Made by a program: the position numbers and the translations under genes
Shown: positions 1 through 19,421 of the stretch, in pieces
Numbering within the stretch: position 1 is the first letter of the stretch
How the letters are laid out: each line of letters opens with the position of its first letter
DNA from: Utricularia gibba
Lineage: Eukaryota > Plantae > Magnoliophyta
Assembly (NCBI GenBank): GCA_002189035.1
Contig: CM007990.1
Span: forward strand, 1 to 64,000
Length of the DNA stretch: 64,000 nucleotides
Direction: 5' to 3'
Notes under the pieces: generated by a model
The model's database searches: none
What the model was told of the DNA's origin: nothing
What the model saw: only the letters and a program-made list of their open reading frames with translations

Positions 1-1128
1 TAAACCCTAAACCCTAAACCCTAAACCCTAAACCCTAAACCCTAAACCCTAAACCCTAAACCCTAAACCCTAAACCCTAAACCCTAAACCCTAAACCCTA
101 AACCCTAAACCCTAAACCCTAAACCCTAAACCCTAAACCCTAAACCCTAAACCCTAAACCCTAAACCTAAACCCTAAACCCTAAACCCTAAACCCCCTAA
201 ACCCTAAACCCTAAACCCTAAACCCTAAACCCTAACCCTAACCCTAAACCCTAAACCCTAAAAACCCTAAACCCTAAACCCTAAACCCTAAACCCTAAAC
301 CCTAAAACCCTAAAACCCTAAACCCTAAACCCTAAACCCTAAACCCTAAACCCTGAACCCTAAACCCTTAAACCCTAAACCCTAAACCCTAAACCCTAAA
401 CCCTAAACCCTAAACCCTAAACCCTAAACCCTAAACCCTAAACCCTAAACCCTAAACCCTAAAAACCCTAAACCCTAAACCCTAAACCCTAAACCCTAAA
501 CCCTAAACCCTAAACCCTAAACCCTGAACCCTAAACCCTAAACCCTAAACCCTAAACCCTAAACCTGAACCCTGAACCCTGAACCCTAAACCCTAAACCC
601 TAAACCCTAAACCCTAAACCCTAAACCCTAAACCCTAAAACCCTAAACCCTAAACCCTAAACCCTAAACCCTAAACCCTAAACCCTAAACCCTAAACCCT
701 AAACCCTAAACCCTAAACCCTAAACCCTGAACCCTAAACCCTGAACCCTAAACCCTAAACCCTAAACCCTAAAACCTGAACCCTAAACCCTAAACCCTAA
801 ACCTAAACCCTGAACCCTAAAACCCTAAACCCTGAACCCTGAACCCTAAACCTGAACCCTGAACCCTAAACCCTAAACCCTAAACCCTAAACCCTAACCC
901 TAACCCTAAACCTAAACCCTAAACCCTGAACCCTAAACCCTAAACCTAAACCCTAAACCCTAAACCCTAAACCCTAAACCCTGAACCCTAAACCCTAAAC
1001 CCTAAACCCTAAACCCTAACCCTAACCCTAAACCCTAAACCCTAAACCCTAAGTCCTTAACCCTAAACCCTAAACCCTTAACCCTAAACCCTAAACCCTA
1101 AACCCTAATCCTAAACCCTTATCCCTAG
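1..1128. repeat. Telomeric array, Arabidopsis-type (CCCTAAA)n = (TTTAGGG)n, at the left chromosome end, with variant units
   Basis: The window opens with tandem CCCTAAA, C-rich on +, as expected for a left end. It is pure for about the first 165 nt. After that come CCCTGAA, CCTGAA, CCTAAA, CCCTAA and CCCTAAAA variants, and it degenerates after about 1050. Confidence 0.99.
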
Positions 1129-2595
1129 CCGTAAAGCCAAAACATTAAACGCGAACTCCTACCCACTGAACCCGAAGGCGTAAATCGAGATTTCTTTCGC
1201 TTGAACATGCAAGCCCACCCTGTTGATTTGCTAAACGCCGAGGGATACCTGAGCTATGTATCAGGCTATGAACACTTTTGCTGGGTTCACCGATGGAGAA
1301 TACTCGGAGCTTTTACTCACTCGGGCAGCCATGGTCATGCGTGGCCAAGAGGGCCCACTTGGAGACTTGGGGGATCTCTTTCTGAGTTGCTCCTACGGAA
1401 CCAATTTCGAAAAGATTGGAAAAATCAGTCATTCACAACCACTGATGAAGGATGCTTCGAAATCCCCCCGCGAAGACAGGTTCTGGAGATTCTCAATCGA
1501 GGGAGGAATAGTGCGGGAAGGGAGCGAGACCAAGCCGAGCCACTAGGTTTGAGCTTGAACGAAATGATGCTTTTCCCCTAACCCCACAAGGTTCTGATAC
1601 GGAGCTTTACCTATGTCTCGGCGTTGAACGGCGATGATCTACGTTTCACGCGGCGACGATTCAAAAGGATTGATTCATAACATGAGGGCTTTGATTACAA
1701 AGAGACCTCTCCAGTATCAATTCATCTAACAATAGCCACGTGTATTTGAAAAACCAAAAAGAGAAAAGTAGATTCCCCATTTCCGAACACACATCGAATC
1801 CTGAAAAGATATCACAAGATGAAGCTGGAGCAGACTGGATGCGAAAATTGCGATCGTAATCGAGTTATTGAAACTCAGATAGGTGCTCCATCATACGATG
1901 AAGTCCATGAAAATTTGAAAACAGAACGGATTGCGGAATGAAACTTGATACATAATTTCAAACAAACCGACGGACTGCTGCTACCGATTTGCTTTTAGAA
2001 CATTGAAACTTGCTCTACCTCGTAGAGTGTGGATTGTTTTTCACACTATTCTATAGGTCCAACTAGTTATTTAGAAATAATAATTATTTATAGCAAGCAT
2101 TTATTTAGAAATTTTAATTTTTTCACTAATCATAAACTATGATATCAAACAAATGTATTTTATAATTTATTTAATATATCATATTTTATTATTTTAAAAT
2201 TTTAGTCTACGACGTTTGTGTCCATTTTTGTAACGGATAATTTAAGTGTGTCATAAATAAACAGCATCGACCTACGGAAAATGCAAATCAAAATTCATGT
2301 ATAAACCCAATGGCAACCGCAAAAGAGAGGATACGTTTTAATATTCATGCAGTCTGCAGCATAGCGTGAAATATATTGAAATCCTGCATTTGAAATTCGA
2401 ATGGAAGAAAATGGATCATTCTTCAAAAGCACATTTTTACATTACAACCCTAACACCATGGGCATGGGAAGGCTTCGCTTCGCATCAATCAACCAATTAT
2501 ATCTATCCACGAGTCCAAATTGGAAGTCGGTTGTAACGGAAGCTTTTTTATTGCAATTTCTGAATGTTTTCCTCTCGCCGATAATTATTCCCTAA

Positions 2596-3144
2596 CTACC
2601 ACCGGCACCGGCGAGGGGCATCCCACAGGCGCACAACACTGCCGTTCAGCACCGTGGGATCTTGCCATCGGTACCAATCCAACTCCCCCACTTTCATTCT
2701 CATCACCGTCGTTTTCTCCCAATCGCAGCAGATCAACTCCAGCTGATGATGGCTTAGGCCAACGAATTCCTCTTCTTCTGCATCTCCTTCTGTTTCCTTG
2801 ATATCGCCCTCGTTCTTGTCATAATACGTGGCAGTAAACTTCAATTTTGTGCTGCCTTGTCGAGCCAAAAGTGGTTTCCCAATCGTCTGCGGAGACACCA
2901 GAAGGCGCTCATCCGGTCCCAGAGCAAGACGCGGAGCCGGAAGTTGTGCGGACTCCAAGGCGTCACGGGCGGGCCAAAGAGGCTCCGGCTCCCGCAATGA
3001 AATTGATCTGATTCTCCAGTAGCTTAAGGCGGCTGTAATAAAAGCCACCCAAGCCCATATACTGTTGATGGCTGATGTGAAGCCGTAGGACAAGTAGTCA
3101 AGAGCAAGAGCTTCTGACGCTGAAGCTAATGCCAGGATGCTCAT
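2596..3144 (-). CDS. Uncharacterised single-exon plant transmembrane protein (At5g20790/At3g43110-like), 182 aa
   Basis: ATG at 3144 (MSILAL...). N-terminal EALALDYLSYGF..NSIWAWVAFITAALSYWRIR and C-terminal WYRWQDPTVLNGSVVRLWD match my recall of this plant family. Confidence 0.8.
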   Translation of the reverse strand: MSILALASASEALALDYLSYGFTSAINSIWAWVAFITAALSYWRIRSISLREPEPLWPARDALESAQLPAPRLALGPDERLLVSPQTIGKPLLARQGSTKLKFTATYYDKNEGDIKETEGDAEEEEFVGLSHHQLELICCDWEKTTVMRMKVGELDWYRWQDPTVLNGSVVRLWDAPRRCRW

Positions 3145-3649
3145 TCTCCTCCTCAACTACTGCTCAGAGGTTGAATTGGGGGTTTTAAATAACCATGTGG
3201 TGAACGAGGTGGAATATCAGGGTAGATTCCGGGGATCCAATAGGAAGATGCGAATTTTCCCTTTGGAGCTTAGCGGCTGAATGGTATGTCTGAGTATGTG
3301 TTTGGGCCTTGCAGATTTAACTTGTATAGCTCCCGCAACGTAAGACTGGTTTTATTATTGAGTCTACACAACAGACCAGACGGATGTGCTAGATTTCGTA
3401 ATCGCAGTGGCACATTTCGGACCATAAAAACCAAGATCATGCAATCCCTCGATTTTCGTAATCCACAAACAAAAAAAGGATATTCCTACTCCATCCTTCC
3501 AATTGTCCGTCCAATGCGAAACCTCGTAACTGCAGCACACTGAATGTCATCCCAATACAACTACGAGCCTCCGTCTTCTTCTCTTATTTTTCTCTCCGAG
3601 TCGGGACATATATTGCACAAACATGTGGTAATTATTACAGGGTAATTGA

Positions 3650-4815
3650 TGGAGTTTTGCCATCAATGCCCAGCGCCCCAGTTGAATCTCTCTAAACTTC
3701 CCAAGGTTGGGCCTCGGAGTCCGTCCAGATTTTTGGTATTTGGGTTGCCGGTTATTCTCGTCGTTTTATTGACTACGCTTTTCCTCCTTGTAACCTACTA
3801 TTTCACAAGGAAGCTGTAGTATTCGGAGGTGATGGAAAATTGGGAACTAGACTACGTATCTCATAGATTCAAATACAAAGATTTGTATGACGCCACCAAA
3901 GGCTTTAAAGACGTGCAATAATTGGGATCAGGAGGATTTGGGAAAGTTTCACGAGTCAAGCCAAGGGATCAAAGAATTTGTAGCTGAAATATTTAGCATT
4001 GGGCGTCTTCGTCACCGAAATCTAGTACCTTTGCTAGGCTATTGCAGACGACATGGAGAATTCCTTTTGGTGTATGAGTATATGCCCAACGGGAGTTTGG
4101 ACAAACATCTTCATAGCGGATCAAACTCCAACCTCAACTGGGCACAAAGATTTCATATTATAAAAGGCGTGGCATGTGGACTTGTTTACCTTCATGAAGA
4201 ATTGGAACAAGTTGTGATCCATAGGTACATAAAACCTAGCAACGTGCTGTTAGATGAGAAATGGAATGCAAGATTGGATGACTTTGGCCTCGCAAGACTA
4301 CATGATCATGGCTCTGACGCATCAACCACGAGCATAGGATTGTCGGAACTCTAGGCTATCTTGCACCAGAGCAAACGCAGACAGGCAGGGCCACCAAGAG
4401 CAGTGATGTGTATGGTTTTGGTGCCTTGTTACTCGAAGTTGCAACTGGTAGGCGACCCATAGGATTCGAAACATCGCTAGCAGACTGGGTTCATTCTATG
4501 TGGATTAAAAATGAAATGCTACGTGCCATGGATCCAAAGTTGAACGGTGAGTTCCCTAGGGATGAAGCGGAGTTGACGTTGAAACTTGGATTGATGCGTT
4601 CTTACCTTCGGCCTGAGGTTCGGCCAAGCATGAGAGACATTGTGGCGTATTTCGAGGATCCATCAACATTGCAAGTACAGGAGTTTTCCATTCCTCGGGA
4701 CATCTCGTATTCCCATGGATTTAACCAAGTTCCTCCACTGTTCCTGTCGCCGACATCGATTAGCACCTCGGGGGCTTTCTCCATTTCAAGTTCGCTTGTT
4801 GCTGGAGGTCGATGA
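3650..4815 (+). pseudogene. L-type lectin receptor kinase (LecRK clade IV-like) pseudogene with no lectin domain
   Basis: Reads WSFAIN..LNLSKLPK, a TM helix, then [24 protein letters not shown]. In-frame stops are TAG 3817-3819 and TAA 3919-3921. Subdomain I-II is deleted after [11 protein letters not shown] has become HRY, and there is a frameshift before [10 protein letters not shown] (~4340). Confidence 0.93.
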
Positions 4816-8134: not shown

Positions 8135-10423
8135 TCACGGATTCCTGGAACCCAGAAGGCGACCAAAAATTGGCAAAGCCTCTTCGAATTTATGGATTCT
8201 GAGGAACCCTTTTATCATATCTCTATCGCCATCAGAAAATCGTGCTTTCTCCATAACCTTGTCAATGAGATTTACTAGAGTTTCTTCCATGTTCAGAGCA
8301 CACAGACCTTGGGCCAGGATATAGAACGAAGAAAATTCTGGGAGATAGCCCTTCGTAGTCATTTCAAACGCAAAGTCAATCGCTTCTCTGATGGGGCCAC
8401 CGCCAGAACAGAGTCCTCGAAAAGCAATTCTGTACGATGTAGCATCAGGAGGCTCAGCTGTCTCCTCCATTTCCCTGAAAAGCCTCATAGCTTCTGCGTT
8501 TTTCTTCCTTATGAAGAGTGACCTAAGTATCGCATTGTAGGCCTGTGGAGTCACACTTAATCCCTTCATCTGGATACTTTTAAGTAGCCTCATACCGACC
8601 TCAGTTCTACCAGCTTTACAAAGCCCTTGGATCAGCGTTCCGTAAGTCACAGCATCTGGTTCACAATTATTTGATGTCATCTTCTGCACAGTGTCAGCTG
8701 CATTCTTAATATCCCCCACTTTACAGAAGTAAGCAAGGAAAGAGTTATAAGTGAACTTGTCAGGTTTTAGACCTTCAGTTATCATTTGGTCCATCAGAAG
8801 AGAGGCATCTTCTAACCTGTTGCATTTGCAAAGGCCATCAATGAGTGTGTTGTATGTGACCATATCTCGGGATAATCCTTGCAGTTCCATCTGATCAAAT
8901 ATCTCCTCCGCTTCTTCAATTTTCTTTCTCTTGCAGAAGCCAGCGATCATGGTATTGTAGGTTATGACACTTCTCGGACACCCACTTGATTCCATATCCT
9001 TGAGAAGTTTCATAGCTTCACCAAACTTGCCTTTTGCACAAAGAGTGTCCAATAAAATGTTGTAGGTAAATTCATCTGGTTTGCACCCTCTAGGCTTCAT
9101 CTCCGATAGGAAATCCATAGCCTTAGTAAAGTTCCCCGTTAAGCACAGGCTCTGTATTAAAGTGTTAAATGTATACAATTCAGGAAGAATACCATTGCAT
9201 CCCAAAACAAGAGCGAGCTGAGTAGCCTCTTGCACTCGATTTTCTTTGCAGAGGATGCTGATTATCGCATTATATGTGGCCGCATTAGGAGAGCAATCTC
9301 TTGAGAGCATATGCTCCATGACTTCCATGGCCATACCAACATCACTTTTTTTGCAGAAAGCAGATATGATAGCGTTGTATGAATAAATATCAGGGTCAAA
9401 GCCCTCCTGGAGCATCAAATCCAAAACCTCTAAGGCATGATCCGCGTGTCCCTCTTTGCATAACCCACATATCAAGGTAGTGAATGTAAGGTTATCTGGA
9501 CAAAACCCACGTCCAACCATCTCCTGCACAAACTTCAGAGCCCCCGCAATATTTCCCTGTTTGCAAAACCCGTCAATCAAGACATTTATAGCACTATTAT
9601 TGCACGGACATTGAACCGCTACCATTTGTTCTCTAAGTCTCAAGGCGCCCTCAAGGTCTCCGATTTCAATATATGCCTGCGTTATTATAGACACAGTCTC
9701 CTCATCCGGAACCAAATTATACTGCGACATCTCCTCCATCAACAGAATAGCGGTCCTGATTTGGTGAACCTTACAAAGTGCTTTTATCAGTAAATTGTAC
9801 GTCAAAACATCGGGATTCACACCATTTTGACGCATCAATGAATGCAAAGATTCTACAAGAATCAATTTACTTTCATCAACGAGAATATTCAGCAAGAAGT
9901 TATAGGTTTGAGTACCTGGGCTTAGTCCAAACTCTTTTTTCATTAACTCAATAACGCCAAAAGCTTCATCATACATCCCAAATTTCGCATAACTGTCTAT
10001 CAAGTTCCGGAATATACGGTCAACAGCCTCCACTTCAGAACGTTTCATTTCATCCAAAACCTGCTTTACCGAATCAAAACAACCCATATTCCCAAGCTTA
10101 AGAATAAGCTCCTCAAAAATAGGCAAATTAGGAGAAAAATGTGGCTGCTTCATGGCCCAGAGGAAGAGCCGAAAACCGGATGCTCCATCCTCCTGTGAAC
10201 GAAGGGTCTCCAGGAATTGTTCAGTTGTGAAACCCGGTGAAAGAGAGATACCTGAACGGCTTGGGGAAACGGCACATAGGACAGTCGACGGCTGGTTATT
10301 TAGGGGAACTGGAGATGAGGTTAGGTTTGGGCGGCTAGACACCGGGTTACAAAGAAACGGGCGGTGGAGAGAGTGAATAGCCGGCGTGTTTGTGTACCAT
10401 TTCAGGCAAGAATTGAGAGCCAT
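8135..10423 (-). CDS. MEE40: P-class pentatricopeptide repeat protein, chloroplast-type, MEE40 (At3g53700)-like, 762 aa, intronless
   Basis: Uninterrupted ORF with many 35-aa P repeats, a transit-like N-terminus and C-terminal GLCSGGGPIREAIDFAFEM..KGYLPEFSSF. Confidence 0.92.
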   Translation of the reverse strand: MALNSCLKWYTNTPAIHSLHRPFLCNPVSSRPNLTSSPVPLNNQPSTVLCAVSPSRSGISLSPGFTTEQFLETLRSQEDGASGFRLFLWAMKQPHFSPNLPIFEELILKLGNMGCFDSVKQVLDEMKRSEVEAVDRIFRNLIDSYAKFGMYDEAFGVIELMKKEFGLSPGTQTYNFLLNILVDESKLILVESLHSLMRQNGVNPDVLTYNLLIKALCKVHQIRTAILLMEEMSQYNLVPDEETVSIITQAYIEIGDLEGALRLREQMVAVQCPCNNSAINVLIDGFCKQGNIAGALKFVQEMVGRGFCPDNLTFTTLICGLCKEGHADHALEVLDLMLQEGFDPDIYSYNAIISAFCKKSDVGMAMEVMEHMLSRDCSPNAATYNAIISILCKENRVQEATQLALVLGCNGILPELYTFNTLIQSLCLTGNFTKAMDFLSEMKPRGCKPDEFTYNILLDTLCAKGKFGEAMKLLKDMESSGCPRSVITYNTMIAGFCKRKKIEEAEEIFDQMELQGLSRDMVTYNTLIDGLCKCNRLEDASLLMDQMITEGLKPDKFTYNSFLAYFCKVGDIKNAADTVQKMTSNNCEPDAVTYGTLIQGLCKAGRTEVGMRLLKSIQMKGLSVTPQAYNAILRSLFIRKKNAEAMRLFREMEETAEPPDATSYRIAFRGLCSGGGPIREAIDFAFEMTTKGYLPEFSSFYILAQGLCALNMEETLVNLIDKVMEKARFSDGDRDMIKGFLRIHKFEEALPIFGRLLGSRNP

Positions 10424-13181: not shown

Positions 13182-14740
13182 ATGCGTCTCCAAATTGATA
13201 TGGGTATTGTTTCCGTGGCAACCCTAAGTATGATTACGAGGCAATGTTGTGGCTACCTTCTAAATCGTACACTTCACTTAGCATTCGCTCCTGGTAAGCC
13301 TAGTCATCCTGTTAATTCGTTCAAGCAGGCTACTGCTCACCAACTAGTCGACGAAATGCCTGATCCAAATGTAGAATCAGCGACAACATGGATTGGGCGC
13401 CTTGCAAATAATGGCAGACACCGGGAAGCCATATTTCATTTCTCCAGGATGTTTCTACTGGGGACATCGTACCAAATGAGTACACATTAGGAACGGTAAT
13501 CCATTCATCTGTACTTCTTAAGGATCTGGACCTTGGGCGACAAATTCACTCTCACGCGACAAAAATCAATCTTAGCTGCAATGTCTTCGTGGGGAGTGCG
13601 ATATTGGATCTTTATGACAAGTTAAGCAATTTTTCTGACGCCCTGACGGCTTTCCAGGATATTAAAGATCCGAATGTTGTTTCTTACACAACTTTGATTC
13701 GTGTTTATATGAAAGAAGGAAGGCTGAATGAAGCTCGGATGGTTTTTCGATCGATGCCTAGGAGAAATGTGGTTTCATGGAACACCATGATCAGTGGATA
13801 CAGCCAATTTGGCGAAAATGAGCAGGCTTTGACTTCCTTCATTGAGATGTTGAGAGAGGGAGTTATTCCTAGCCAATCTTCTTACCCGTGTGCCGTTGTG
13901 TGTGCAGCCAACCTTGGTGCTCTTGGAACAGGCAGGAGCATTCACGCCAGTGCAATTAAATTCTTAGGTGAACTTGGCTTGTTTCTCTCCAGTTCCTTGG
14001 TAAGTTTCTATGCCAAGTGTGGAGTCATGGAGGATGGCCTTCTGATGTTCATGAATATGAAGGAGAAAAACATAGTTTCCTGGAATGCTTGCATTTGTGG
14101 TCATGCACAGAATGGGCAAGGGAAAGAAGCGATACAAGTCTATAGAATGATGAGAGAAGGCGGCATAGAACCAAATAGCGTCACGCTTCTCGGATTGCTA
14201 ACAGCAATCAGCCATGCTGGTCTAGTTGAAGATGGCTATAGGTATTTTAACGAGGCAAGGCAAAAGGGCACAAGTCTCCTTACGGCAGAACATTATGCGT
14301 GCATGATTGATTTGCTGTCGCGGTCAGGGAGGTTTCGGGAAGCTGAAATGTTTATTCACGATCTGCCATTTGATCCAGGTGTTGGGTTCTGGAAGGCACT
14401 GCTTGGTGGATGTCAAGTGCATTCGAACACGAAGTTGGGAGAGGCTGCAATAAGGAAGATCTTGGATTTGAATCCTGGAGATATATCTTCTTATGTAATG
14501 CTTTCTAATGCTCTGTCTGCTGCAGGGAGATGGGAGAACGTAGTGGATATAAGAGGAATGATGAAGAACAAGGGGCTAACCAGAGTTCCTGGTAACAGCT
14601 GGATAGAAATCAAAAGCAAAGTTCATGTGTTTGTCACAGGAGATAGAAACCACAGCAATATGCACGAAATTCACACGCTAATCGGATTTCACATCCAACA
14701 TGCAGTGGACTATGAAGTGGCAATCGATGATGTGGCTTAG
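13182..14740 (+). CDS. PLS-E class PPR protein (At5g42450-like), with one frameshift at ~13460-13465
   Basis: The frame DEMPDPNVESATTWIGR..FSRMFLL switches to IVPNEYTLGTVI..NVFVGSAILD, which runs to the E domain (PGNSWIE) and stop 14740. Motifs WNTMISGYSQ and FWKALLGGCQVH are present. Confidence 0.9.
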
Positions 14741-15026: not shown

Positions 15027-16210
<1,184 letters not shown>

Positions 16211-16640
16211 TGCAACCATATGTAGCTCTCACCCTTCCATAGAAGCACTCAGCTGCCAAAAAAACCAAGAAGAATAGCATCAGCCACACTGTAAGATTCA
16301 ACATGAACTTTATTTTCTGCTAATGAGAAAGCGAGAACCTGACCTGCTCCCGACGCAGGGTTCTACTGGAGAAGTTCAACAATTTATTTAATAGCGAGCC
16401 CATGACATCAGGTCCGTGTCGTCTGAATGAGCTTTTAAAGGGTTTTTTGGGCCACATAAGGGACCCCATTCAATAGTGGCCGCGGATATCAACAAAAAAT
16501 TATTTATTATTGTAGATGCTCCCTTACACATTTCTCAGAACTTTCCCAGCTTCGTCCGCTCTTGGTCGCAATTCTCCTCCTTTTTTTCGTTCCTATTGGA
16601 CTTGACAATCGATGTTTCGAAGTGCTGGCCTGTGAATCTA

Positions 16641-16775
16641 ATGGAAACACAAAGAGGGGTTTGTCTCTCTCAATGGAGGATGGATAACAGGCCAAGAAAA
16701 AGACCTCGTTTGACGTGGGATGTGGCTCCGGCGATTCCTCCTCCGGAGACAATGCATTCTATGTCTAAACCCTAA
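16641..16775 (+). pseudogene. AFC1: Orphan first exon of LAMMER kinase AFC1
   Basis: METQRGVCLSQWRMDNRPRKRPRLTWDVAPAIPPPE matches the AFC1 N-terminal RPRKRPRLTWD motif. No kinase exons follow. The frame ends at a TAA inside a telomere repeat (16773-16775). Confidence 0.85.
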
Positions 16776-16783
16776 ACCCTAAA
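16765..16783 (+). repeat. Short interstitial telomeric repeat / telo-box, CTAAACCCTAAACCCTAAA
   Basis: 19 nt of perfect telomere repeat in the same orientation as the terminal array. Confidence 0.9.
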
Positions 16784-16819
16784 TCAGTTGTAACCATTAT
16801 CCTCATCTTTGCCTCATAG

Positions 16820-17324
16820 AACTAAGAAAGCACTACCAACTGCCAAAGCTGGAGTCTGGGGCATGTGCTGCCCTTGCTCCCATTGAAGAAGAGTGCGTTG
16901 TATCTGAAGACAGCCTAGGAGAAGAATTTGGGTGCTGGCGCATGTCTTATGCAGTTGATGTGCTGGTTGGCTCGGGTATTGAAGAGACGTACTTCAGCAT
17001 CTTAGGAACACACTGGAATTATCCAGATAATACGCTGGACCCAGGCCTGTTTAACGATCTCGAAGTAAGTACGGCACTGGAGTCCCTTAGGGGACATCCG
17101 ATAAAATTGGAACGGCACCGGAAACTAGAGGGTCCGAGTCAGAGAGGAAGCTACTTTTTGACCTATTAAATTCAGGTTTGTCACAGATCTTCCAAGATCA
17201 TGTTGAATCTTACCCCGGGATGACGTCAAAAGTAGCGGGACGGCTTGATTCCAATAGAGAAAAGGAAGCAGTCGGCGATGCAATCGCCAGATTGATCAGC
17301 CCGGAGAAGCATCAAGTGTGCTAA
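16820..17324 (+). pseudogene. Orphan last exon of a TRM/LONGIFOLIA-family DUF4378 gene (At3g53540-like), frameshifted
   Basis: An acceptor cctcatAG at 16818-16819 precedes ELRKHYQLPKLES...SYAVDVLVGSG..WNYPDNTLDPGLFNDLE. After a frameshift it continues SERKLLFDLLNSGLSQIFQDH. These are DUF4378 hallmarks (LKLES, YxxDVL, PLDPxLFxxLE, RKLLFD). Confidence 0.8.
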
Positions 17325-17930: not shown

Positions 17931-17939
17931 GTAGAGATC

Positions 17940-18013
17940 CGACCACAGTGGGAGTCGAACCCACGACCTTCTGATCCGAAGTCAGACGCGCTAATCCACT
18001 GCGCTATGCGGTC
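17940..18013 (-). tRNA. trnR-TCG: tRNA-Arg(TCG)
   Basis: The reverse complement folds as a cloverleaf: GACCGCA/TGTGGTC acceptor stem, TCTGA-CT-TCG-GA-TCAGA anticodon arm and GGTTCGACTCC B box. There is an upstream CAA and a downstream T5 terminator. Confidence 0.97.
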
Positions 18014-18110
18014 ATTGGCAAAGCAATGCAATATTTAATATAAAAGACCAACACAGGTGAAACTACTATAAACCTACACCCACCGTAACGCCTTCTTTCG
18101 CCGGAACGAA

Positions 18111-19421
18111 ATGACGAAGATGCCTGTCCTTCTCTCCCTTTTCCTTCTGCTGCTTCGCTTCTCCATGGCCGAGATCAAGAACCTTAAGATTTCGTCAGAT
18201 TCTCGCTCGATGATACTCTTCGAACGATTCGGATTCACGCATACCGGTCACGCCACGATCACAGTCTCAGGCGTCTCCGTCATTTCCGGTGTTTCTTCCG
18301 CGGACTCATCTCAATTAGGTTTCTTCCTTCTCTCTGAAGAATCCCTGATTCAAGTGCTGCTTGAGCTGCAATCTAATCCTTCCTTTTGCGTCCTTGATTC
18401 GAAGTATATTAATCTTCTATTTACCTTAAGAGATCTCTCCCCTCCACCCTCTTCCTCGTTCAATCTCTCTTACCCTGTGACCGCTCCTAATGAATATTCG
18501 CTGTTTTTTGCCAACTGTGCACCTGAATCGAAGGTGTCCATGGACGTAAGGACCGAGCTTTATAATATGGATGGTCGTGGGAGAAATCAGAAGGACTATT
18601 TATCTGCTGGGTTAACTCAATTACCCACTTTGTATTTCTGTTTCTCAGTTCTTTATGTTTCCTTTCTGGGGTACTGGATCTATTTCTGCTTCCTGAATAA
18701 GAAATCTGTGCATAGGATTCATTTGCTCATGGGTCTTTTGGTGATTATGAAAGCACTGAACTTGCTTTGTGCTGCTGAGGATAAGCATTACGTTAAGGTT
18801 ACAGGGACACCGCATGGATGGGATATATTGTTTTACATTTTCCAGTTTATCAGGGCTGTCTTGCTATTCACTGTCATAGTTTTGATCGGTACTGGGTGGT
18901 CTTTTCTGAAGCCCTTTCTGCAGGAGAGGGAGAAGAAGGTGTTGATGATTGTCATCCCATTGCAGGTCCTGGCTAATGTAGCCTTCATTGTAATTGGGGA
19001 GACAGGGCCTTTCATTAAGGATTGGGTGACCTGGAATCAGGTTTTCTTACTGGTAGATATCGTTTGTTGCTCTGCAATTATCTTCCCTATTGTTTGGTCC
19101 ATTCGGTCTCTGAGGGAGACGTCCAAGACTGATGGCAAGGCTGCAAGAAACCTAGCAAAGCTTACGCTTTTTAGGCAGTTCTACATTGTTGTGATCGGAT
19201 ACCTGTACTTCACCAGGATCGTAGTGTTTGCTCTGAGGACAATCTCTGCTTATAAGTATCAGTGGGTAGCTAATGCGGGTGAAGAGATTGCAAGTCTTGC
19301 TTTCTATGTGATCATCTTTTACATGTTTAGGCCACTTGAGAAGAATGAGTACTTTGTACTTGACGAGGTGGATGAAGAGGCTGCAGAAGTTGCTCTTCGT
19401 GAGGAAGAGTTCGAACTTTGA
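18111..19421 (+). CDS. GPR107/GPR108 (lung seven-transmembrane, CAND6/CAND7-like) protein, 436 aa, intronless
   Basis: Signal peptide followed by AEIKNLKI, lumenal LFFANCAPE, seven hydrophobic helices, LFRQFYIVVIGYLYFTRI and an acidic C-terminus. Confidence 0.95.
   Translation: MTKMPVLLSLFLLLLRFSMAEIKNLKISSDSRSMILFERFGFTHTGHATITVSGVSVISGVSSADSSQLGFFLLSEESLIQVLLELQSNPSFCVLDSKYINLLFTLRDLSPPPSSSFNLSYPVTAPNEYSLFFANCAPESKVSMDVRTELYNMDGRGRNQKDYLSAGLTQLPTLYFCFSVLYVSFLGYWIYFCFLNKKSVHRIHLLMGLLVIMKALNLLCAAEDKHYVKVTGTPHGWDILFYIFQFIRAVLLFTVIVLIGTGWSFLKPFLQEREKKVLMIVIPLQVLANVAFIVIGETGPFIKDWVTWNQVFLLVDIVCCSAIIFPIVWSIRSLRETSKTDGKAARNLAKLTLFRQFYIVVIGYLYFTRIVVFALRTISAYKYQWVANAGEEIASLAFYVIIFYMFRPLEKNEYFVLDEVDEEAAEVALREEEFEL

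Follow-up and report, generated by a model that had tools for sequence, protein, structure and literature searches.

A perfect 19-nt stretch of telomere repeat lies between a remnant of the LAMMER kinase gene AFC1 and a remnant of a TRM/DUF4378 gene in the window, by which we mean the whole stretch of 64,000 nucleotides that was analysed, and we give an even chance to the reading that this stretch is a junction-associated telomeric filler that was added at a break. The locus is a dead remnant of gene loss in a compact Lamiales genome, probably of the Lentibulariaceae: all that survives of the TRM gene is the end of its last intron and a decayed last exon, and the 5′UTR and first coding exon of AFC1 stand where the rest of it used to be. 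Gene stubs that are left by the loss of duplicates are routine in small plant genomes, and it is the telomeric join that is unusual. For mammals, there are documented cases of telomere repeats at internal sites of repair; for plants, they are mostly a proposal. A join in which telomere units bridge two recognisable gene pieces would be a clean single-locus example, as in the related species examined neither partner gene has such units at the matching position. Judged against the intact loci of related species, this one locus is by itself no more than suggestive of telomeric repair. The features on which the following analysis draws are, in the order of their positions:

1–1109, + strand: terminal telomere array in which CCCTAAA is the main unit and about 8% of the units are CCCTGAA; the start of the window is a chromosome end
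15028–16210, − strand: RPL23a, apparently intact, with exon 1 at 16210–16195, the main exon at about 15722–15353 and the last exon at 15116–15028
16572–16745, + strand: AFC1 (LAMMER kinase) stub, consisting of 5′UTR matches and the first coding exon, with the ATG at 16641
16746–16764, + strand: 19 nt without significant homology, candidate exon end and donor, or filler
16765–16783, + strand: perfect telomere repeat 19-mer of 2.7 units, with the C-rich strand on +
16784–16819, + strand: tail of the last TRM intron, about 35 nt, with a pyrimidine tract and an AG acceptor
16820–17067, + strand: first part of the TRM/DUF4378 last exon, in frame from 16822, matching Penstemon TRM residues 768–860
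17068–17093, + strand: frameshifting insertion of 26 nt that starts with GTAAGT and ends with TTAG, too short for a normal plant intron
17094–17324, + strand: second part of the TRM last exon, in a different frame, with a Pfam DUF4378 match and an early stop at 17322–17324
17939–18014, − strand: tRNA-Arg(TCG), found by Rfam
18111–19421, + strand: CAND7/GPR107-like gene, intact and intronless, used as the synteny anchor

The earlier note had placed the first exon of AFC1 at 16641–16748. This is borne out by homology, and the end is approximately right, with secure similarity reaching only to 16745. The translation of 16638–16745 matches the N-terminus of Arabidopsis AFC1 at 58% over 36 amino acids (E 3e-9), and the stub matches the AFC1 N-termini of Genlisea, Andrographis, Salvia and Sesamum at 61–68% over 34–36 amino acids (E 1e-6 to 8e-9). 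At the DNA level, 16640–16742 matches Genlisea AFC1 at 75% over 103 nt (E 4e-14). The N-terminal feature of LAMMER/AFC1 proteins, RPRKRPR(L/M)TWD after MET(Q/K)R, is present in the stub, in which the RPRKRPRLTWD motif is retained and the DFPHR motif has decayed, and the divergence of the stub from its orthologues exceeds that between intact AFC1 genes. Short 5′UTR matches to Andrographis AFC1 lie at 16572–16594 and 16608–16625, in the correct order upstream of the exon. Neither a CMGC/CLK-type kinase-domain exon nor any other AFC1 exon was found in the whole 64 kb window, and the AFC1 piece can for this reason be counted as a gene fragment and not as a gene.

The AFC1 orthologues were searched for with the natural 358-aa ORF of an Arabidopsis metatranscriptome contig (L015) that carries a partly spliced AFC1. 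Contigs with Arabidopsis AFC1 and with grass AFC genes were retrieved from public metagenomes by means of a degenerate DNA pattern for KRPRLTWD, and exons and natural ORFs were searched separately, one by one. An origin of the AFC1 piece as a retrocopy was considered and ruled out, as the Andrographis-like 5′UTR matches are in genomic order and no precise intron loss is seen.

The acceptor and last exon of a TRM/DUF4378 gene, which had been proposed to begin at 16820, are confirmed by alignment to the exons of Penstemon TRM and by the Pfam DUF4378 match. Position 16820 aligns to the base with which the last exon of Penstemon TRM begins, both the pyrimidine tract and the AG acceptor are kept, and weak similarity to the TRM intron extends back to about 16785. 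The DUF4378 match (PF14309) is partial, with an E-value of 1e-5 and a score of 26.4 bits against a cut-off of 25.7, and the C-termini of Lamiales TRM proteins match the stub with E-values of 5e-8 to 2e-16. A HMMER search with 16783–17067 against 1.8 billion representative proteins returned only Lamiales proteins of the DUF4378/TRM type (570–970 aa), with the matches near the C-terminus, and short fragments.

The TRM stub represents only residues 768–923 of a 972-aa protein. The N-terminal VARLMGL and DUF3741 regions, both of which are listed as domains in intact orthologues, and the long central part are absent from it, and the other exons of both AFC1 and TRM, which the earlier note had reported missing, were not detected in the 64 kb window. 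What is left of the TRM exon has been damaged by the 26-nt frameshift insertion, by several in-frame indels and by the deletion of about 90 nt of the conserved C-terminus, and reads as the remnant of a dead gene. The 26-nt insertion and a nearby insertion of 15 nt (17111–17125) have an ACGGCAC(T/C)GGA core in common, which suggests a local templated duplication. No second copy of either the linker of the join or the 26-nt insertion exists elsewhere in the window and, thus, no local template was found for them.

The gene order of related genomes places the TRM stub. In Andrographis, RPL23a lies directly upstream of TRM, head to head with it and 4 kb apart. Primulina TRM is followed at a distance of 1.1 kb by a tRNA-Arg(TCG) on the opposite strand (contig L009, 15172–15245) and then by Ank-PGG; this opposite-strand pairing of TRM and tRNA-Arg(TCG) is conserved between the window and Primulina (Gesneriaceae). 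The order in Genlisea is Ank-PGG, a 244-aa gene, Lipin and CAND7, and Lipin adjoins CAND7 in both Sesamum paralogues. From the gene orders of Andrographis, Primulina, Genlisea and Sesamum, we infer that the ancestral order was RPL23a, TRM, tRNA-Arg, Ank-PGG, Lipin and CAND7. Of these genes, RPL23a, the tail of TRM, the tRNA and CAND7 are still present in the window, and the TRM stub is thereby evidently in its ancestral slot. The exons of RPL23a in the window have 87–100% amino acid identity to Andrographis RPL23a, and the CAND7 protein is 88–90% identical to Lamiales proteins, with no identical record returned by an exact look-up. In a maximum-likelihood tree, CAND7 is sister to Genlisea aurea (support 100/97); the tree does not separate the old paralogue blocks and so gives no sign as to which stub is "at home".

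Several observations concern the surroundings of this block. Only 96 nt (18015–18110) separate tRNA-Arg from the CAND7 ATG, and Ank-PGG and Lipin are gone; their loss is a second large loss, and it is without telomeric filler. In Andrographis, the spacer between RPL23a and TRM (contig L007, 5971–10000) contains no called gene, AFC1 trace or telo-box, and measures 4 kb, which is long beside the spacers of about 100–400 bp that separate the adjacent called genes on its left side. The subtelomeric 15 kb of the window carry a protein-kinase domain fragment and two PPR genes (3887–4354, 8135–10423, 13589–14740), among which the EamA genes that flank Andrographis RPL23a have no counterpart.

The position of the AFC1 piece is not accounted for by the same ancestral order. 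The earlier note had taken AFC1 (At3g53570) and a TRM gene (At3g53540) to be near neighbours in Arabidopsis. This argument does not carry over to a genome that belongs to Lamiales and not to Brassicaceae, and AFC1 is not adjacent to TRM at the TRM loci of the four Lamiales covered. Andrographis AFC1 is 3 Mb from TRM and on the opposite strand, Penstemon smallii has AFC1 and TRM on different chromosomes, and no trace of AFC1 was found within 10 kb of TRM in Andrographis, Penstemon, Olea or Primulina. In seven Lamiales loci, no AFC1 exon, AFC1 kinase remnant or homologue of the Arabidopsis TPR neighbour was found near TRM/CAND7, and no RPL23a was found upstream of the intact AFC1 of Genlisea (in 1.19 kb) or Andrographis (in 10 kb). 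For the putative adjacency of AFC1 and TRM19 in Arabidopsis, a literature search found no AGI code for TRM19. In the public metatranscriptome contig L015 of Arabidopsis (335–3391), the partly spliced AFC1 runs into a downstream TPR gene on the same strand.

Locus tags nevertheless connect AFC1 to the anchor of the block. The AFC1 and CAND7 tags are 105685 versus 105678 and 105681 in Salvia splendens, 102316 versus 102308 and 102309 for the homeologue in the same species, 64800 versus 67400 in Buddleja, 004820 versus 004806 in Cinchona and 024196 versus 024214 in Escallonia, which corresponds to a distance of a few to a few dozen genes. On the basis of these tags, AFC1 is part of the same old conserved block as CAND7 in several asterids. 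The proposal that a single deletion fused two neighbours therefore stands only in part: the adjacency that it presupposes is unsupported in the Lamiales covered, and AFC1 is a member of the CAND7 block. As no AFC1–TRM adjacency was found, and no RPL23a upstream of intact AFC1, one deletion is only one of two live options for the AFC1 piece, which may either have been situated between RPL23a and TRM in this lineage before that deletion or have been captured or copied in at the break from a linked AFC1.

The assignable AFC1 and TRM parts are separated by 39 nt, of which 19 nt are perfect telomere repeat. This 19-mer has the orientation of the terminal array at 1–1109, which is composed of 142 units (115 CCCTAAA, 12 CCCTGAA, or TTCAGGG on the G-strand, and a few length variants) and from which the AFC1/TRM join lies 15.7 kb inward. 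A 14-nt telomere-repeat pattern with one mismatch allowed matches the whole window only in the terminal array and in the 19-mer, compared to an expectation of 0.03 matches per whole window from shuffles. The identity of the 19-mer to the telomere stops at 19 nt with no extension beyond. The telo-box core AAACCCTA is present in it, and outside of the telomere one other telo-box 8-mer occurs in 63 kb, which is about the chance level. Rfam found only the tRNA, and a snoRNA gene is thus ruled out as the source of the telo-box.

The 19-mer sits between AFC1- and TRM-derived DNA and is separated from the AFC1 stub by the 19 nt at 16746–16764. MAFFT places the GT at 16763–16764 on the donor of the orthologues, with an identity near chance at that site, and a comparison of 16746–16764 with Genlisea intron 1 gave no significant match (the best local score was equalled in 30 of 500 shuffles). 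These 19 nt are either the diverged end of the AFC1 exon with its donor or further filler. The telomeric 19-mer is perfect while the stubs that adjoin it are decayed, which fits either a recent event or selection on a working motif.

The earlier note had raised the possibility that an intact AFC1 intron already has the repeat. Intact AFC1 of Andrographis and of Genlisea has no telomere repeat at the matching position of intron 1, and the last intron of TRM is likewise without one in each of four Lamiales (Andrographis, Penstemon, Olea and Primulina). In Genlisea, the telomere motif is absent from all 4.5 kb of the AFC1 contig. Intron 1 of Andrographis AFC1 contains one copy of TAGGGTTT, about 165 nt from its start; this copy is inverted relative to the 19-mer, and its flanks are unrelated. 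Arabidopsis AFC1 has a single telo-box, also inverted, which is upstream of the exon and about 230 nt upstream of the motif. No telo-box was found at the Andrographis RPL23a locus or at any of the four TRM loci.

These comparisons bear most directly on the explanation that requires no telomerase, namely that the repeat is a native telo-box of the AFC1 5′ region or intron 1, or of the divergent RPL23a/AFC1 promoter, that was spared by ordinary deletions. We regard this explanation as the main rival of telomeric filler, albeit an unlikely one. Telo-boxes of Arabidopsis are found mostly in 5′UTRs and in introns 1 and 2, with an excess at ribosomal-protein genes (PMC3022908), and the 5′ ends of AFC1 do carry telo-boxes in both Andrographis (TAGGGTTT, in intron 1) and Arabidopsis (upstream). 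As described above, however, each of these orthologues has only a single, inverted unit with unrelated flanks, the 4.5 kb of the Genlisea AFC1 contig contain no such motif, and the Andrographis RPL23a locus is without a telo-box. The stretch 16746–16764 could be the remains of an intron that carried the motif, and the perfection of the repeat despite its decayed flanks is what a native element would also display. Such an origin requires deletions on both sides of the motif that ended at it or very near it, and telo-box 8-mers occur at chance level in the window. The layout can be read in both ways: a site II-like TGGGCC at 16448–16453 is upstream of the repeat in the AFC1 orientation, but on the RPL23a side the repeat is found farther upstream than the site II motif, at about 555 nt from the ATG, which is unusual. 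The 19-mer is about 125 nt downstream of the AFC1 ATG and 310 nt from TGGGCC.

Under the reading in which the 19-mer is filler at a repaired break, the course of events would be as follows. A double-strand break would have left a centromere-side end within the TRM intron. This end would have gained a few telomere units, either from telomerase that was starting to heal it or from telomeric DNA that was copied during end joining, and the extended TRM end would then have been ligated to the AFC1-bearing end with the loss of the intervening DNA. The C-rich strand is on +, and the G-rich repeat would hence have been added at the 3′ end of the centromere-side (TRM) fragment. The suggestion in the earlier note that the orientation of the repeat suits extension of one broken end holds in this form, with the 19-mer matching the polarity for the centromere-side end. 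As for the source of the units, the sequence appears to be compatible with both telomerase synthesis and the copying of telomeric DNA.

The same polarity would result from two separate events, in which a new telomere formed on a break in the last intron of TRM, so that the chromosome ended for a time at the TRM stub, and this telomere, once shortened, was joined to a distal fragment that bore the PPR genes, RPL23a and AFC1 exon 1, with 19 nt of repeat remaining. A healed centromere-side end would have precisely the orientation seen here, and the locus is subtelomeric. However, the distal RPL23a is the ancestral neighbor of TRM in Andrographis, so that the distal fragment is most simply the original one, which leads back to a single step, and an extra event is required; we consider this sequence of events improbable. 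Finally, a history without any break, in which a chance CTAAAC-like motif expanded by slippage or the join is an assembly or consensus error, is very improbable, as the resemblance of the Andrographis AFC1 intron start (GTACTAAC) to one telomere unit is outweighed by the 0.03 matches to the 14-nt telomere pattern that shuffles yield per window, by the uncommonness of slippage of a 7-nt unit to 2.7 perfect copies and by the length of the 19-nt tract, which is too short for a long-read misjoin.

The closest parallel to telomeric filler at a repaired break comes from mammals, in which short interstitial telomeric sequences at double-strand break sites have been read, by comparative genomics, as the work of telomerase in break repair (Nergadze and co-workers; PMC2246262, PMC7215372, PMC8537989). 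Similar to these sequences, the 19-mer consists of short exact telomere units at an internal site and is absent from the matching loci of related species. The mammalian cases, however, are clean insertions with flanks that are contiguous in an empty orthologous site, whereas here a multi-kb loss and the join of two genes are involved. Furthermore, the present join is found in a plant with a 7-nt unit.

In Arabidopsis, telo-boxes have a published overall density of about 155 per Mb, which rises to about 680 per Mb within 5′UTRs (PMC3022908), and Gaspin, Rami and Lescure (2010, PMC3022908) proposed that telo boxes originate when telomerase adds units to free 3′ ends in 5′ regions that are open. 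The present join is in accord with that model. The 19-mer resembles plant telo boxes (AAACCCTA) in carrying the same motif and in being located in the 5′ region of paired genes, one of which encodes a ribosomal protein. Typical telo boxes, by contrast, comprise one unit near the transcription start and downstream of site II, whereas the repeat described here comprises 2.7 units between two gene stubs and has no conserved counterpart in the orthologues. A broader interpretation would make telomerase a recurrent emergency patch at internal breaks in a shrinking genome, with this join having also planted a multi-unit telo-box beside a ribosomal-protein gene. We put this forward as a conjecture that is rather doubtful. 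If it were true, the proposal that plant telo boxes originate from telomerase would gain direct evidence at the sequence level from this join.

The reported fillers at plant junctions usually have genomic sequence, nearby or ectopic, or T-DNA as their template, and we know of no established example of telomere repeats as plant filler. Filler DNA at plant end-joining junctions was reportedly described by Gorbunova and Levy in 1997 and by Salomon and Puchta in 1998. The AFC1/TRM join is similar to such junctions in that it is a deletion junction with bases foreign to both flanks, possibly in patches (the AFC1 piece, the 19 nt without homology and the telomere units). It differs from them in that the usual fillers are genomic or T-DNA copies and the bases here are telomere units. 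Chromosome healing by de novo telomere addition likewise places G-rich repeats on a centromere-side 3′ end, and the subtelomeric setting is shared with it, but healing gives a terminal array, whereas the repeat at the join is limited to 19 nt and still has distal DNA joined to it.

The gene stubs as such are what the deletion of duplicates ordinarily leaves. The loss of duplicate genes by deletion in the small genomes of Lentibulariaceae was reportedly described by Ibarra-Laclette et al. in 2013. As in such genomes, the remnants are found in ancestral slots between intact neighbors, with Ank-PGG and Lipin also missing. The stubs themselves are no different from the remnants of such losses, and it is the telomeric join that sets the locus apart.

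The AFC1 stub and RPL23a are head to head, with ATGs that are 431 bp apart, as previously stated (RPL23a ATG at 16210 on the − strand, AFC1 ATG at 16641). The 431-bp spacer contains the TGGGCC at 16448–16453, and there is no telo-box between this site II-like motif and RPL23a. It was likewise correctly noted that the linker supplies the stop of the AFC1 ORF: read-through in the AFC1 frame ends at 16773–16775, inside the repeat. Putative splicing between the GT at 16763 and the AG at 16819 would excise only 57 nt and lead into the TRM exon out of frame, with a stop after about 21 codons. Since AFC1 read-through stops in the repeat and the putative splice leaves the TRM frame, no fusion protein would be expected from the join. 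Transcription of the stub from the divergent RPL23a promoter is possible.
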